Notes under the pieces: generated by a model | The model's database searches: none | What the model saw: the letters and a program-made list of their open reading frames with translations, nothing else | Told to the model about the DNA's origin: nothing | Made by a program: the position numbers and the translations under genes | From: Octopus bimaculoides | Taxonomy: Eukaryota | Length of the DNA: 64,000 bases | Assembly (NCBI RefSeq): GCF_001194135.2 | Contig: NC_068981.1 | Location: 152,083,213 to 152,147,212, forward strand | Reading direction: 5' to 3' | Part shown: in pieces, positions 292 to 45,700 of the stretch | Position numbering within the stretch: position 1 is the first letter of the stretch | Layout of the letters: the number at the start of each line of letters is the position of its first letter

Positions 292-321
292 CAGTACCAG
301 GTTCTCCTACAGAAAGCTAGT
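292..321 (-). pseudogene. Dead linker microexon
   Basis: 30 nt, but the second codon is TAG and the donor is GT>AT. Confidence 0.75.
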
Positions 322-511
322 CTGCAGGGTATAAATGAATATCCATCACCTTCACCTTTATCATACCAACAAGTACAAATTACAGGTTTCCTACAAAGAT
401 TTTCTTTGGCAATTATTTTTATGATTAATAATGGTTAGCAAGGTACATGAAAAAAAATCGAAATATTTCACTGCAAAGAACTTGATATTTCTATTGTACA
501 AACAGGCATAC

Positions 512-778
512 CTTCCACAGATAATGTGGCTGATGTAGACACATCACCTACCACACAAGTGTAGTCTCCTTTATCTTGCAAAGTAGCATTCTCAATAATC
601 AATTGGTGAACCTTCTTATCGGCAACAATCTTCAAGTGACTATCACTTTTGATTTCTTTGCCATTCTTCTTCCATTTGACTTTTTTGTTTTCTTTTGACA
701 ACTCACAAAGCAAAACAGCTTTTTCTTTTTCTTTCACTTTAATATTTACTAATTTCTTTGTAAATTCAGGTTTTAGTT
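512..778 (-). CDS. I-set Ig exon ([10 protein letters not shown]...SATLSVE), 267 nt
   Basis: Open 89 codons; acceptor ttcccttag, donor G|gtatgc; phase 1-1. Confidence 0.92.
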
Positions 779-39700: not shown

Positions 39701-42700
39701 ACACAAACAGAACATACAATTATTTTCGAAAATATCAAGTAGTCACATGTGATTGAATTTGACTTACAAGTCTCGCACAACAATAGTAGAGAACACTTCA
39801 AAACAACATTAAACAATAAATAGACTTGACATTTTATATTTTATATTATCTGTACTGGGAATTCCTATGTTTTTTTATCGTTACTTGGAAGCAGAATGGT
39901 ATAAATTGTAAACGGATATACTTTATTTTTCAGTATTCTGTCGTGCACGCACGCGCGCGCGTGCGCGTGTACAAACACATATTCAAAAATATATATGTAA
40001 CACAGACAAATATGTAACATGAAAAAATGGTATATTAAATACCATACAACATAAATTCTTGATTTATTAATATTATCTTCACCTCTGGAGGGTGTGTCAC
40101 ATTTATCAAATGATAACTGAAGCAAGCTCCATTTGTGAAGGATATAATCTCGAGAATCGAGAATTTCACTAAAGCCAAAGTTGACATGTCATCAAAAAAA
40201 AAAAAAAAAAAGAATTATTTTCAAGTGATTAAAGGACGTGTTCCTGCCTTAATAGGCGTTATCAGCACGACAATTGTTCTAGAAATAAAGTTGTCTCGAT
40301 AACAATACAACGTCAACAGACATACATTCATGCCATTTGGAAATGAGAAACTCAACAGTGTTATGCATTTCTATGCAAGCAGTTCTGTAGAGTATAAAGA
40401 AATATGAATCATATATATATATATATATATATATATATATATATATATAAGTGCGCGCGCGCGTGTATTGTAGAATAGTAGATCTCGAAGCAATTACAGC
40501 TATATATATGTTGGACTGAAAAACCCTATGGTTAGAAAAAGTTGAAGACTGTCCTACAGGCAGCAATGTGTATGTGTGTGTGTGTGTGTGTGTGTGTGTG
40601 TGTGTACGCTCTCGCGCGTGTGGTTATGCATGTATGTATGTAGACTATAAAAATCAGGAGGTATGAGAGGTGAATATATTTATGTAACCACTTGACATCT
40701 TTAAGATCACACCGTTTCGCAGTCTTCATTTAGTAATAATTTCAGTGTAGAATAAATTGTTTGCATGAATCCTCATGTTACGCACTATACAGTGCAACTG
40801 TGTATTCACAAAACAGTGCAAATAAAGAAAGCTAACTTATTTGATTACCAGAACATCATGGTCACGCTAACGATTCAACTGTTACTATACTCACAAAATT
40901 TTCTCTTTATATACACAGTGTATAGAAAACAGAGACTAGATAAAATTAACTTGGTATGGTCAGTAAAAATAAATACATGTTTCATATCAATAAGTTACCA
41001 AATAGAAGTTTAGGGAATTGACCGTTTTTTATTGCTAGCATAAACACGAGAGGGCAAAAAGAGGAAGTAAAGTAGTTGAAGAAATAGCTTAGAATATATG
41101 TAAAATACATATGAAATTGTAATATAAATTAATTAAATGAGGAAAAGACAGCTGGAATAATAAAGATTAGACCAAGAAATAGTATTGGACAACAGCAAGA
41201 TTCAAATAGGGTTAAAGGTCGAAATGCCACACATAAAAACTTATGGAGATTAATTATAATCACATCTTCGAGACATACCTCAAAATACTTTCTAGCTCAA
41301 TGAGCTGTTGTAAAACCAAACTGTGCACACAGCAACACAGAAGCACAAGCAGAGACGCATGAACATACTAAAAAATACACAACACCCCCCCACACACACA
41401 CACACACACGCAATCGTGTACTCTTTTTCACCCATGTATATACATATAGACCACACAGAGAAAAACATCTGCACACACTCAAACATATATGTGTATGTAT
41501 ATGAATACATAAGTAAAACTATACACACACATATGAATACATACATAAAACATAACGCATACACACACACACACACACACACACATATATATGTATACAC
41601 ACACAGTATAAGTACACATACAAGCATATCTATGTATACGAATATATACATATATACACATATGTACATGCATGTATAGATGCACACATATCACGGGAAG
41701 CCGTGATCGACCAAATTATCGGATGTTGGTATACATTGCTGGTCACAATGCGTTTTGCATCATTTTAGCTTTCGAATCCCACTGAGTTACTCATTTACAT
41801 CTGAGTGGACTGGACCAATGTGGATTGGAGCATTTTGCTCAAGAAAACAACGCGCGCCACGGGAATCGAATCTACAATCTAGCAATCGTGATTGCGACAC
41901 CCGAACCGTTAGTATATGCACCTTCACACATGCAGATATACACCCATACATACTCATTCACCTGTGCACACATTTATACATACATATATGCGTATATACA
42001 CGTATACACATAACTTTACAAATATATATATATATATATACAGACTATGAAATTAACAAAAAACAGTCTTCAGTATTCCCTTGAAGATTTTATTCTCTAC
42101 AGCAATATTTCTACCAAATTAAATCTATGATTAGTATAAGTTAGTAAATTCAATGTTTCTACGTTCATGTGTATTTTTTGCAACATGCATCAGTTATTGT
42201 GAATTTGGGTTGCATAGAATTTCTTTTATCTCAACACGTTTCAAAATTGTTTCTAATATCGTCTTAATTCATGTTATCAACCAGTGCAACCTTTTCTTGC
42301 AAAATGCGCAAGAGCATAGTTCCCCATGCTTGTATCTGAAGGGTCTCCAAATTCCTGTTCTAATGTTTCTTAAAAAATGATGCAATCAATCTCGGCCTTC
42401 ACTTTCATTATCCCACTACTGGGTTATTCTGTAGCGAATTCATCTTGCTTATGCAGATGTTAAACACTTAATCTTTTGAGTTTTAAGGGATACTATATGC
42501 GTCAGGATACTTCTGATAGAGAGTTTACTTGGAGTATAGCACCTTACATTTCAATCAGATCTGTGTAGTGCTCAAAACAGTCTAACAAGTGTATCTAAGC
42601 ATAAAAGAAGCCAGATCAACACAAATAAAAGAAATTGTGTCATTAAAGCCAATATCTTTAATATCTTCAAATATCTTTTTTGGATCACATAATCAAGTGA

Positions 42701-45700
42701 TTCACAAAATAAGGACGCAGGCGTCTACAACATACAGTTTTGTATGGTATAAATAAATATTAATCATCTTCTACTATAGCCTCGGGCCGACCAAAGCCTT
42801 GTGAGTGGATTTGGTAGACGGAAACTGAAAGAAGCCCGTCGTATATATATATATATATGTGTGTGTGTGTGTGTATGTTTGTGTGTCTGTGTTTGTCCCC
42901 CCAACATCGCTTGACAACCGATGCTGGTGTGTTTACGTCCCCGTAACTTAGCGGTTCAGCTAAACAGACCGATAGAATAAGTACTAGGCTTACAAAGAAT
43001 AAGTCCTGGGGTCGATTAGCTCGACTAAAAGGCGATGTTCCAGCATGGCCACAGTCAAATGACTGAAACAAGTAAAAGAGTAAAAGAGAGTATCTATACA
43101 TTTACACATTTAGAATTAATATACAGATCCTCATTCAAAGTAATAAACTAATAGAGCTTACAAGTTGCCATTAAGTATTCCGACTCCACAAAATAATAAT
43201 ATTACTAATTATCTCTAAGTTTATAAAAAATTAATAAGGTACTTAATAGGAATATCAAAGTTTTCTCTGCGAAGAATTAGCTATTTCTAATATACAAACA
43301 AGCGAACCTTCGAAGTCAATGTGGCTGATACATCACTGCCATTATATGTTATTCTTTTATTCTTTTACTTGTTTCAGTCATTTGACTACGGCCATGCTGG
43401 AGCACCGCCTTTAATCGAACAAATCGACCCAGGTCTTATTCTTTGTAAGCCTAGTACTTATTCTATCGGTATATTTTGCCGAACCGCTAGTTTACGTGGA
43501 CGTAAACACACCAACAATTACACAAACACACATACATACATACATACATACATACATATATATATATATATACATACATATATATATACGACGGGCTTCT
43601 TTCAGTTTCCATCTACCAAATCCACTCACAAGACTTTGGTCGGCCCGAGGCTATAGTAGAAGACACTTGTCCAAGGTTTCACGCAGTCGGACTGAACCCG
43701 GAACCATGTGATTTGGAAGCAAGTTTATCACCACACAGCCACTCTTGTTGCACACAGCCACTCCAGTTGCACACAGCCACTCTTGTTGCAAAGAAATTTT
43801 CCATAATCACTCGAGGAACCTTCATATATAACTTTTTTTCTTTTCATTCACTTTACTGTCTATGAATTTTTCTTTTTCTCTTTGTAAATTCAGCATTTAC
43901 TTGTAGGGAGAAAGAAGTTACAATTAGAAAATATCACATGGGCAGTAGAAGAAGGAGAAATAATACATAAAAAGATCATACAGGGAATTATGCACAGAGA
44001 AGTTTGTATAGGTTACAATTATTTACAAATCACACACATATGTTAGATACAAAACACTGCAAAAGGATATTTAAACAACGAGTGTCTTCTAAATTTGTTT
44101 GATAAGTTGTAGTATAACTAACGAAAATTTGTAAACATTCTATGTACCCAGTGTTATAAGTTGTAAGGTGATATACACATAGTAATACATTTACACATGG
44201 ACACACATACATAAATTCGCACACATCCGAGCGCACTCGCGCGCACATACATACTGTGTGTGTGTGTGTGTGTGTGTGTGTGTGTGTGTGTGTGTGTGTG
44301 TGTGNNNNNNNNNNNNNNNNNNNNNNNNNNNNNNNNNNNNNNNNNNNNNNNNNNNNNNNNNNNNNNNNNNNNNNNNNNNNNNNNNNNNNNNNNNNNNNNN
44401 NNNNNNNNNNNNNNNNNNNNNNNNNNNNNNNNNNNNATATATATATATATATATATATAAAGCTAATTCGTAGACTACAGATCCAATCCATCACTTGAAC
44501 TGTAAAAATTTGTAGAACTTTCCATAATTTTATCATTTAGATATATATGAGCATATCTAGATATGCAACTATATGCATGTGTATACATACATAAAACATA
44601 AATCTGCGCATACGTACATACATACATACATACATATATACAAAAATATCCTGTTTAAATTTCAGTGAATATCCTGATGTTTAAATTCCAATGAAGGAGC
44701 CTTGGATCGAAGTCGGAGACCGGCTCTTTCTCTATTGGCGGGAAATCTTGAAATAAACTGAATAATGACATACATACATACATACATATATACAGTGTAC
44801 ACTTTTCGTACGTAGTACAGTTTAGTAATGGTTCTGTATACTATAGTAATTCTTCATTCTCTACTGAACTTTATAGGGCGATGTCACTGCCAATTTTCTT
44901 TACGATTAGTAAATGTTAGTTTTGTGTTAATCAAAAACTCAAAGATTTTTCCTACTATTAAGTTGCTACTTTCAATATACAAACAAACGTACCTTCCACA
45001 GATAATGTGGCTGATGTAGACACATCACCTGTCACACAAGAATATTCTCCTATATCTTCCAAAGTAACATTTTCAATAATCAATTGATGAACCTTCATAT
45101 CAGAAACAAGTTTTATGTGATCATCACTTTTGATTTCTTTGCCATTCTTTTTCCATATGACTGTTATATTTTCTTTTGAAACTTCGCATATCATCATTGC
45201 TTGTTGCTTTTCTTTAACTTTCATGTCCTTTATCGTTTTTGTAAACTCTACTTTAGCATCTGCAAATGGGAAATGTTTTGAACACTTTTAAAATATGTAA
45301 ATTATTTTATGTAACTGATTGCTTTAGAATCCAGAATACATGATTTCCAATTGTTTTCCCTATCTCACAACCAACCCTTTTCACAACCAACCTTTTTATT
45401 TAAGTATTTTACACTTCTGTATTTGCATATCATTTCTCCTGAGAGGAAGAGCTCGCCATTTTCCATTATCATTGCCACCAAAATCTACAGATTCACGTTA
45501 ATGGCACGTCATGACATATCACTTTGGTAGCTCGATGACCAACAGAAAAAAAGTTTAAGCTGTATTTCTCAGTTACACATAGATTAGTGAGTATTTTGTT
45601 TGCTTCTTTCTCGCTTCCACTGACGGATAACGCTTACCTTTCCTGATGTCTCGGGTGAGAAACACACTTTCAGACACCTTTCTATGTGTACATGAAGAAT

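Follow-up and report, generated by a model that had tools for sequence, protein, structure and literature searches.

Optional 30-nucleotide linker microexons interleaved with tandem immunoglobulin exons in a probable obscurin/UNC-89-like gene of Octopus bimaculoides

Titin and obscurin serve as textbook examples of muscle elasticity set by the alternative splicing of symmetric-phase exons, and in both the joints between neighboring immunoglobulin (Ig) domains are fixed in exons. A stretch of 64,000 nt from Octopus bimaculoides (NC_068981.1:152,083,213-152,147,212; assembly GCF_001194135.2), referred to here as the window, raises the question of whether such a joint can itself be a separate, optional exon. 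The window is AT-rich (GC ~31%), with many microsatellites and five N runs, and contains an array of Ig exons interleaved with 30-nt microexons that had been noticed from the sequence in a preliminary description. The array is real, and its features lie without exception on the minus strand, which that description had left unstated. We consider it probable that the window represents the central tandem-Ig region of an obscurin/UNC-89-like giant muscle gene, with optional 10-residue linkers between the Ig domains. Microexons are named by their start coordinate and Ig exons by start or full range, and all coordinates are collected in Table 1.

Searches with the Ig consensus (tblastn) yielded 20 intact copies in addition to five with stops or frameshifts. 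Every intact Ig exon is exactly 267 nt long (an 89-residue unit), bounded by AG and GT, and in phase 1-1; all 20 finish in G, while 19 begin with AA and one (44993-45259) with AT, so that the codon rebuilt at each junction is GAA or GAT. The encoded domain is of the I-set type (Pfam, E=8e-18) with a net charge of -3 to +5, near neutral or basic, and the donors of these exons are weak (G|GTAYGC). Identity between exon copies reaches 98% in some cases. Pairwise dN/dS for the 20 exons is 0.21 at a dS of ~0.35; by this measure the copies have had time to diverge and are maintained as protein.

The microexons were located with a peptide scan (E.P.V.EPDT) that returned 12 matches, every one of them on the minus strand. 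Nine of these have CAG/TAG|AA...G|GTGAGT splice sites, one (15087-15116) ends in A|GTGAAT and produces a lysine junction codon (AAA), and two (32375 and 19985) are without working splice sites. A generic scan for phase 1-1 microexons likewise pointed to a single strand, with all 20 of its hits on the minus strand. The linker exons show what is expected of microexons, being no longer than 51 nt, a multiple of three and frame-preserving, with strong splice sites and conserved flanks; the donors are consensus-strong, reading G|GTGAGTGT in nine of ten copies. Across the ten intact microexons, identity is 84-87% over the 30 nt taken together with 20 nt on the upstream side and 12 nt on the downstream side, and in the outer intron it is 47-50% further upstream and 61-70% further downstream. 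All ten copies share residues E1, P3, V5, E7, P8, D9 and T10 and vary at positions 2, 4 and 6. The last 13 nt (GAGCCTGACACTG) are invariant with synonymous sites included, so part of the constraint is probably exerted at the RNA level. As a separate observation, nine of the ten acceptors read CCTGCAG, with TGC right before the AG; SRRM3/4 (eMIC)-dependent microexons have UGC near the 3' splice site as their cis motif, and its presence here may be taken as a lead only toward regulation of that type.

Blastn and local alignment added a microexon relic after almost every other Ig exon. The tally for the array is therefore 20 of 25 Ig exons intact and, for the microexon positions, 10 of 23 intact and 13 decayed. 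Within a unit, 181-231 nt separate the Ig exon from the microexon, and the next Ig exon is in most cases a further 512-850 nt away, with larger distances in several units. This regular spacing, together with the relics, indicates that the ancestral duplicated unit comprised an Ig exon plus a microexon; as reconstructed from sequence, the ancestral module is an Ig exon, an intron of ~200 nt, a microexon and an intron of ~0.7-0.8 kb. The preliminary description had given the same module structure and phase 1-1 design, which tblastn, the peptide scan and the spacing bear out. It had also counted 20 live Ig exons and ten live 30-nt linkers, and both counts are right, as are the residues that it listed for linker positions 2, 4 and 6. 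Its further points, that splice junctions make acidic codons and that any subset of exons can be skipped in frame, likewise stand: glutamate or aspartate is found at the joints, with a single lysine exception from microexon 15087-15116, and all exons are phase 1-1.

In order to see how these exons are used, three paired-end RNA runs from the same species (X24, X37 and X38; raw reads, ~6% of each run sampled) and a fourth, older run in the form of contigs (X26) were mapped to clean stretches; the tissue of each run is coded, and the data are short reads. The spliced joints are all CT..AC on the plus strand, that is, GT..AG on the minus strand, and they occur between two Ig exons as well as between an Ig exon and a microexon in either order. 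The microexon tally covers 31021, 28685, 36821, 27436, 23094, 21228 and 18851. Three of those covered, 31021, 28685 and 36821, are present in a minority of transcripts. Inclusion of microexon 31021 was 0/20 in X24, 8/27 in X37 and 3/8 in X38, which differs across samples (0/20 in X24 vs 11/35 in X37 and X38 together, p=0.004), and in the same two runs it also differs from that of microexon 21228 (11/35 vs 0/43, p=5e-5). The linker microexons are true alternative cassette exons. Single Ig exons are optional as well: exon 28933-29199 had a depth of 0-0.7 in X24, X37 and X38 vs 2-35 in its neighbors, and it is used in X26, where a contig carries the joint 29199->30242. Joint 27963->30242 omits one Ig exon and joint 27963->31264 omits two, in each case along with the intervening microexons. 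Microexons thus occur in transcripts and the exon combination varies, as the RNA joints, the variable inclusion of 31021 (p=0.004) and Ig exon 28933 demonstrate; microexons that are never included, or one invariant combination, would have left the preliminary description with its structure and without its tuning idea.

Some further features of the RNA data are recorded here in their own right. Exon 28933-29199 has an atypical donor, GTACAC (GTACGC or GTATGC in other copies), and a CGTAG acceptor. Joints that go back along the array (27963->27697, 32884->27697, 21705->20241) are numerous at 27697-32884 and 20241-21705. The final 67 nt are identical in exons 30242 and 27697, and other exon ends differ at only 0-4 nt; these joints probably arise because near-identical exon ends make reads from ordinary junctions map ambiguously, and their interpretation as back-splicing (circular RNA) or as a copy-number difference in the sequenced animals was rejected as unproven. 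RNA editing was rejected as the source of T>C and A>G read differences, as the sites are paralog differences that co-occur with other mismatches, pointing to cross-mapping.

At the protein level, direct splicing yields ...SVE-E-(I/L)KPEF..., with essentially no linker, and inclusion of a microexon adds E-x-P-x-V-x-E-P-D-T between two Ig domains, with a charge of ~-4. The structure prediction that the preliminary description had proposed as a check was run on the counterpart from the cuttlefish Acanthosepion pharaonis (P0002). In the AlphaFold2 model, the four Ig domains have pLDDT >90 and two direct joints 86-91, and the microexon linker (residues 221-227) has pLDDT <50 with no secondary structure; the linker is thus predicted to be disordered and the direct Ig-Ig joints to be ordered. 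In the mechanism that we propose, the array would have grown by tandem duplication of a ~1.0-1.4 kb module of an Ig exon plus a microexon, with birth-and-death evolution reducing 25 Ig exons to 20 live ones and 23 microexons to ten. Default splicing joins the Ig exons directly, with cassette microexons and single Ig exons optional. The insert would be an unstructured acidic spacer with a contour length of ~3 nm that may lengthen and loosen its one joint, so that splicing could set how many Ig domains there are and also how many joints are flexible and where. A "combinatorial mechanical code" through the switching of joints, as the preliminary description had put it, may follow from this arrangement.

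The transcript of the array also carries a second kind of microexon segment. In the generic phase 1-1 scan, at least 14 more 30-nt microexons came up on the minus strand, upstream of the array; the plus strand had none. They form a six-exon, 60-residue super-repeat in ~2.3 copies within 51218-63719. Splicing of microexon 51218-51247 to Ig exon 1 was detected in 8, 11 and 3 reads in the three raw runs in addition to an X26 contig, so the transcript of the array carries a segment built wholly from serial 30-nt exons. Seven of the upstream microexons (the six of copy 1 and the first of copy 2) are confirmed in serial splicing, and the RNA shows a partner upstream of copy 1 that lies past the window end; the run continues beyond the window. 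The segment is made up of 10-residue units in which E, S, T, V and R are abundant and P and K scarce, and it forms no domain. The 140-residue peptide from these microexons had no match among 5.8 billion predicted proteins. Comparison of the linker microexon regions with the upstream microexon array by blastn gave no nucleotide homology, and a common origin of the two kinds of microexon would be a guess.

The nearest proteins to the Ig array are from cephalopods, Argonauta hians (76% over three domains) and A. pharaonis (45%), and a more distant match is a Mytilus protein named OBSCN. The Argonauta array has 267-nt exons of equal phase with AA...G ends, and it contains two 30-nt microexons (ELTVVEQPDT, AG|AA...G|GTAAGT) placed ~350 nt after Ig exons, with later units having none. 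In the cuttlefish, a 33-nt phase 1-1 microexon (EAVGDVESDEA) follows an Ig exon within gene model P0002. Two additional phase 1-1 candidates lie between Ig exons outside the gene model, at 19392-19421 (30 nt, EFAEDTYGET) and 43-75 (33 nt, ETDEKDSSTFE) of A. pharaonis L002. We infer that the module of an Ig exon plus an acidic microexon probably predates the split of octopods and decapodiforms. Every Ig exon in the window has a paralog (82-98% identity) that is nearer to it than any Argonauta exon (at most 87%), which indicates that the arrays expanded or were homogenized separately in each lineage. The Argonauta gene models fuse Ig exons directly, and only one cuttlefish model has a linker microexon; with the 30-nt exons and the upstream run missing from most models seen, the annotation of this gene in cephalopods is incomplete.

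Several observations weigh against the proposed reading, some bearing on the identity of the gene and others on the linkers. As to identity, the window displays what marks an obscurin/UNC-89 gene, namely a run of I-set domains in the class of ~88-92 residues with direct joints dominant in RNA, and one Ig per exon in phase 1-1 and in the 264-276 nt class, with cassette splicing (28933 and others skipped). In Argonauta, a 4853-residue gene model for which I-set, RhoGEF and PH domains are listed follows directly downstream of the array on the same strand, an order like that of obscurin. This RhoGEF-PH model is separate from the array, so that the link rests on synteny in another species; a search for an Argonauta RhoGEF-bearing protein returned one 89-residue fragment, and no kinase, SH3 or DH-PH exon was found within the 64-kb window. 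The best sequence matches in the PDB are tandem Igs of the titin I-band (5jdd, 3b43, 7ahs) and MyBP-C, with obscurin Igs lower, and a non-domain segment of many small exons beside differentially spliced Igs recalls the PEVK/tandem-Ig layout. Both would fit a titin/connectin-type I-band spring that is not an obscurin/UNC-89 orthologue. We regard that identity as improbable, given the same-strand RhoGEF + PH + Ig model adjoining the Argonauta array, the CELSKE..KV.WKK motif, 267-nt exons and linker-less joints that fit obscurin, the distant match named OBSCN in Mytilus, and a microexon segment that is poor in Pro and Lys and not of the PEVK type, in which repeats are ~28 residues long and rich in P, E, V and K. 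The preliminary description was right to place the array in the obscurin/titin class, and within that class we read the gene as probably obscurin/UNC-89-like, without claiming orthology as proven.

The linkers face a different objection, which is that they could be leftovers of a decaying module whose low inclusion is tolerated splicing noise, with only the Ig exons of importance. Direct Ig-Ig joints dominate in the three deep runs (X24, X37 and X38), where no reads were obtained for the intact microexons 27436, 23094 and 21228 and only a trace for 18851; inclusion is 0-37% where measured. With only 10 of 23 microexon positions intact, the claim of a hinge "between each Ig" in the preliminary description was overstated. 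Given the decay of 13 of 23 positions and the retention of just two copies by Argonauta in the 29 kb examined (~17 units), selection on any single linker is weak. The coded RNA tissues and the small fraction of each run that was read also limit what can be said of usage, and near-identical exons cross-map, leaving some joints not assignable to one exon pair. Nevertheless, the leftover explanation is an unlikely one: the ten intact copies retain frame, length and both splice sites and are far more conserved than the nearby intron, while their neighbors display neutral decay; two live microexons survive beside dead Ig exons; a microexon of like design exists in Argonauta and cuttlefish; and inclusion varies by sample (p=0.004) and by microexon (p=5e-5). 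It could also be asked whether the decapeptide, acidic, Pro-flanked and ending in Thr, is mainly a docking, phosphorylation or charge element that alters partner binding, comparable to the mini-exons of LAR-type receptor phosphatases, and not mainly a hinge. Seven invariant positions exceed the needs of a pure spacer, and a linker of ~-4 stands out from Ig domains at -3 to +5. This function seems to us rather improbable, as the synonymous invariance of the last 13 nt may reflect conservation at the RNA level, e.g., a splicing enhancer, no known motif was matched, and the cuttlefish and Argonauta versions differ in sequence while retaining length and acidity. Finally, part of the array might be an assembly artefact of collapsed, expanded or mis-joined copies near N gaps, in view of the two N gaps within it, the exon copies up to 98% identical and the joints in RNA that go back. 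Such an artefact is very improbable: 84-88% of sampled 31-mers of 26039-32888 were found in 11 of the 12 independent DNA runs listed (three studies), copy divergence (dS ~0.35) is sufficient for assembly, identical exon ends account for the joints in question, and the spacing and orientation of units are alike on both sides of the gaps.

Set against known systems, the optional-linker array is familiar in one half of its design. In human OBSCN, there is one Ig per exon of 264-276 nt (many exactly 267), all in phase 1-1, with developmentally regulated skipping of whole Igs (PMC11871629), and obscurin Ig domains are joined without linkers (PMC2196875). The octopus array shares with vertebrate OBSCN its I-set Ig per exon, the 267-nt class, phase 1-1, recent similar duplicates, linker-less joints and cassette Igs, and the Ig half, with one Ig per exon, phase 1-1, recent duplication and cassette splicing, is the known obscurin/titin design. 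Human OBSCN also has a 33-nt phase 1-1 exon, exon 74 of the meta-transcript, that encodes no domain, lies between Ig63 and Ig64 and is listed in the four full-length isoforms (PMC11871629, Table 2). That exon is the sole microexon-sized exon between Igs there and no repeated interleaved microexon exists, whereas here the microexon is duplicated with the module and optional. Interleaved optional linker microexons are absent from the human OBSCN exon table, and a literature search, among searchable papers, found none and turned up no work devoted to obscurin microexons in cephalopods. Linker microexons of this interleaved, optional and paralogous kind appear to be new.

The titin I-band offers a further parallel in its symmetric-phase exons and many in-frame combinations, with splicing setting Ig number and the unstructured spring. 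Its PEVK exons share one phase, and between its Igs stiff linkers alternate with hinge-like ones, each of them fixed within an exon. In titin, however, the Ig and unstructured blocks are separate, whereas here 10-residue spacers are interleaved one per Ig, and the PEVK units are ~28 residues long and rich in P, E, V and K, compared to 10 residues here. In LAR-RPTP (meB) and NCAM (VASE and MSD), inclusion of an alternative microexon places a few extra residues within or between Ig or Fn3 domains, altering interdomain geometry or binding; those are single sites in extracellular adhesion receptors of neurons and muscle, in contrast to ten paralogous sites in what would be an intracellular sarcomeric giant. 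UNC-89 of C. elegans has a long disordered spring segment between two kinase domains (10.1101/2020.04.03.023374; PMC13242403). The likeness lies in an obscurin-family protein with a long disordered spring segment, and the difference in its location, which is between kinases there and, for the microexon run here, upstream of the tandem-Ig array. The interkinase region of UNC-89 is not known to have a microexon organization.

In the octopus array, the joint is an optional exon in its own right, which recurs from unit to unit and is used in RNA, with use varying by sample. If inclusion proves muscle-specific, this would provide a natural system for how Ig linker length sets chain mechanics and would bear on the tuning of passive mechanics in the muscles of a soft-bodied animal. 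A broader proposition, which we put forward as tentative and on balance doubtful, is that cephalopods encode the compliance of the sarcomeric Ig chain joint by joint, through an optional 30-nt hinge exon per joint, muscle- or stage-specific sets of hinges and Igs, and a spring of serial 30-nt exons, with no counterpart described in vertebrate titin or obscurin. Were this joint-by-joint reading true, the protein would be a splice-programmable elastic filament.

Table 1. Exons, microexons, relics, gaps and read-supported joints in the window, listed along the minus strand. Microexon groups are given by range and individual starts; numbers after run names are reads.
Feature	Position	Strand	Basis or remark
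Super-repeat copy 1	61496-63719: 63690, 63341, 62623, 62261, 61898, 61496	-	five joints, GT..AG, in X24, X37, X26; four in X38
Super-repeat copy 2	54684-57326: 57297, 56959, 55975, 55491, 55111, 54684	-	splice 61496->57326 as loose end, X26 contig
Super-repeat partial copy 3	51218-51555: 51526, 51218	-	51218 spliced to Ig exon 1
Ig exon 1, first of array, most diverged copy	44993-45259	-	starts AT; expressed; 5' end spliced to microexon 51218-51247
N gap in intron after Ig exon 1	44305-44436		(TG)25 left, (TA)n right
Ig exon	39380-39646	-	tblastn, 267 nt phase 1-1
Intact linker microexon	39141-39170	-	peptide scan
Ig exon	37044-37310	-	tblastn, 267 nt phase 1-1
Intact linker microexon, in transcripts	36821-36850	-	exact 30 nt between two Ig exon sequences in X37 reads
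Decayed Ig pseudo-exon	35635-35847	-	stops, deletions
Decayed Ig pseudo-exon	34019-34240	-	tblastn
Ig exon, expressed	32618-32884	-	joint 31530->32618
Dead linker microexon	32375-32404	-	CAA for CAG acceptor; ends A|GT
Ig exon, expressed	31264-31530	-	RNA
Intact linker microexon, alternatively included	31021-31050	-	joint 30508->31021: X24 0, X37 8, X38 3; joint 31050->31264: X37 5
Ig exon, expressed	30242-30508	-	RNA
Ig exon, alternatively used	28933-29199	-	RNA depth; donor GTACAC
Intact linker microexon, alternatively included	28685-28714	-	joint 27963->28685: X24 4, X37 3; joint 28714->30242: X38 1 + X26 contig
Ig exon, expressed	27697-27963	-	RNA
Intact linker microexon, no RNA reads	27436-27465	-	TAG acceptor; depth 0
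Ig exon	26041-26307	-	tblastn, 267 nt phase 1-1
Decayed Ig pseudo-exon	24736-25010	-	tblastn
Decayed Ig pseudo-exon	23333-23600	-	tblastn
Intact linker microexon beside dead Ig exon, no RNA reads	23094-23123	-	peptide scan
Ig exon, expressed	21439-21705	-	RNA
Intact linker microexon	21228-21257	-	RNA joints; skipped in 63/63 junction reads
Ig exon, expressed	20241-20507	-	RNA
Dead linker microexon	19985-20014	-	no AG, no GT
Decayed Ig pseudo-exon	19099-19366	-	tblastn
Intact linker microexon, trace RNA only	18851-18880	-	X38 depth 0.08
Ig exon	17776-18042	-	tblastn, 267 nt phase 1-1
Ig exon	15339-15605	-	tblastn, 267 nt phase 1-1
Linker microexon with A|GTGAAT end	15087-15116	-	peptide scan
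Ig exon	14100-14366	-	tblastn, 267 nt phase 1-1
Intact linker microexon	13065-13094	-	1005 nt after its Ig exon
Ig exon	11178-11444	-	tblastn, 267 nt phase 1-1
Ig exon	10117-10383	-	tblastn, 267 nt phase 1-1
Ig exon	8885-9151	-	tblastn, 267 nt phase 1-1
Ig exon	7227-7493	-	tblastn, 267 nt phase 1-1
N gap in intron between Ig 7227-7493 and Ig 3128-3394	3883-4098		(TA)n on left
Ig exon	3128-3394	-	tblastn, 267 nt phase 1-1
Ig exon, last in window; array may run on past position 1	512-778	-	tblastn, 267 nt phase 1-1
Dead linker microexon	292-321	-	in-frame TAG; G|AT for G|GT
Ten further microexon relics	~42718, 40344, 34850, 33595, 30015, 25803, 24411, 17554, 8636, 2903	-	blastn, local alignment
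Direct Ig-Ig joint	30508->31264		X24 20, X37 19, X38 5
Direct Ig-Ig joint	20507->21439		X24 20, X37 34, X38 9
Direct Ig-Ig joint	31530->32618		X24 1, X37 12, X38 3

A hidden exon or a mis-join is possible at either of the two N gaps within the array; with every exon autonomous and in phase 1-1, whatever the gaps contain has no effect on the reading frame. One X26 contig joins the 3' end of an Ig exon to the first 30 nt of exon 39380-39646. Those first 30 nt are identical in exons 8885-9151 and 39380-39646, and the last 39 nt are common to exons 44993, 20241, 14100, 11178, 10117 and 8885; the use of this contig as a bridge over the gap at 44305-44436 was withdrawn, as the adjacent pair 10117->9151 fits equally well.

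Outside the exons, long intronic open reading frames at 58200-58909 (minus strand), 11306-12342 (plus strand) and 37681-38173 (minus strand) resemble transposon remnants, and a Pfam search with six transposon-like reading frames gave no match. Intronic pieces at 35400-35640, 44440-44800 and 27200-27300 have very high, polymorphic RNA depth on both strands, with many chimeric loose ends, which suggests that they are copies of a repeat or low-complexity element abundant and expressed elsewhere in the genome.

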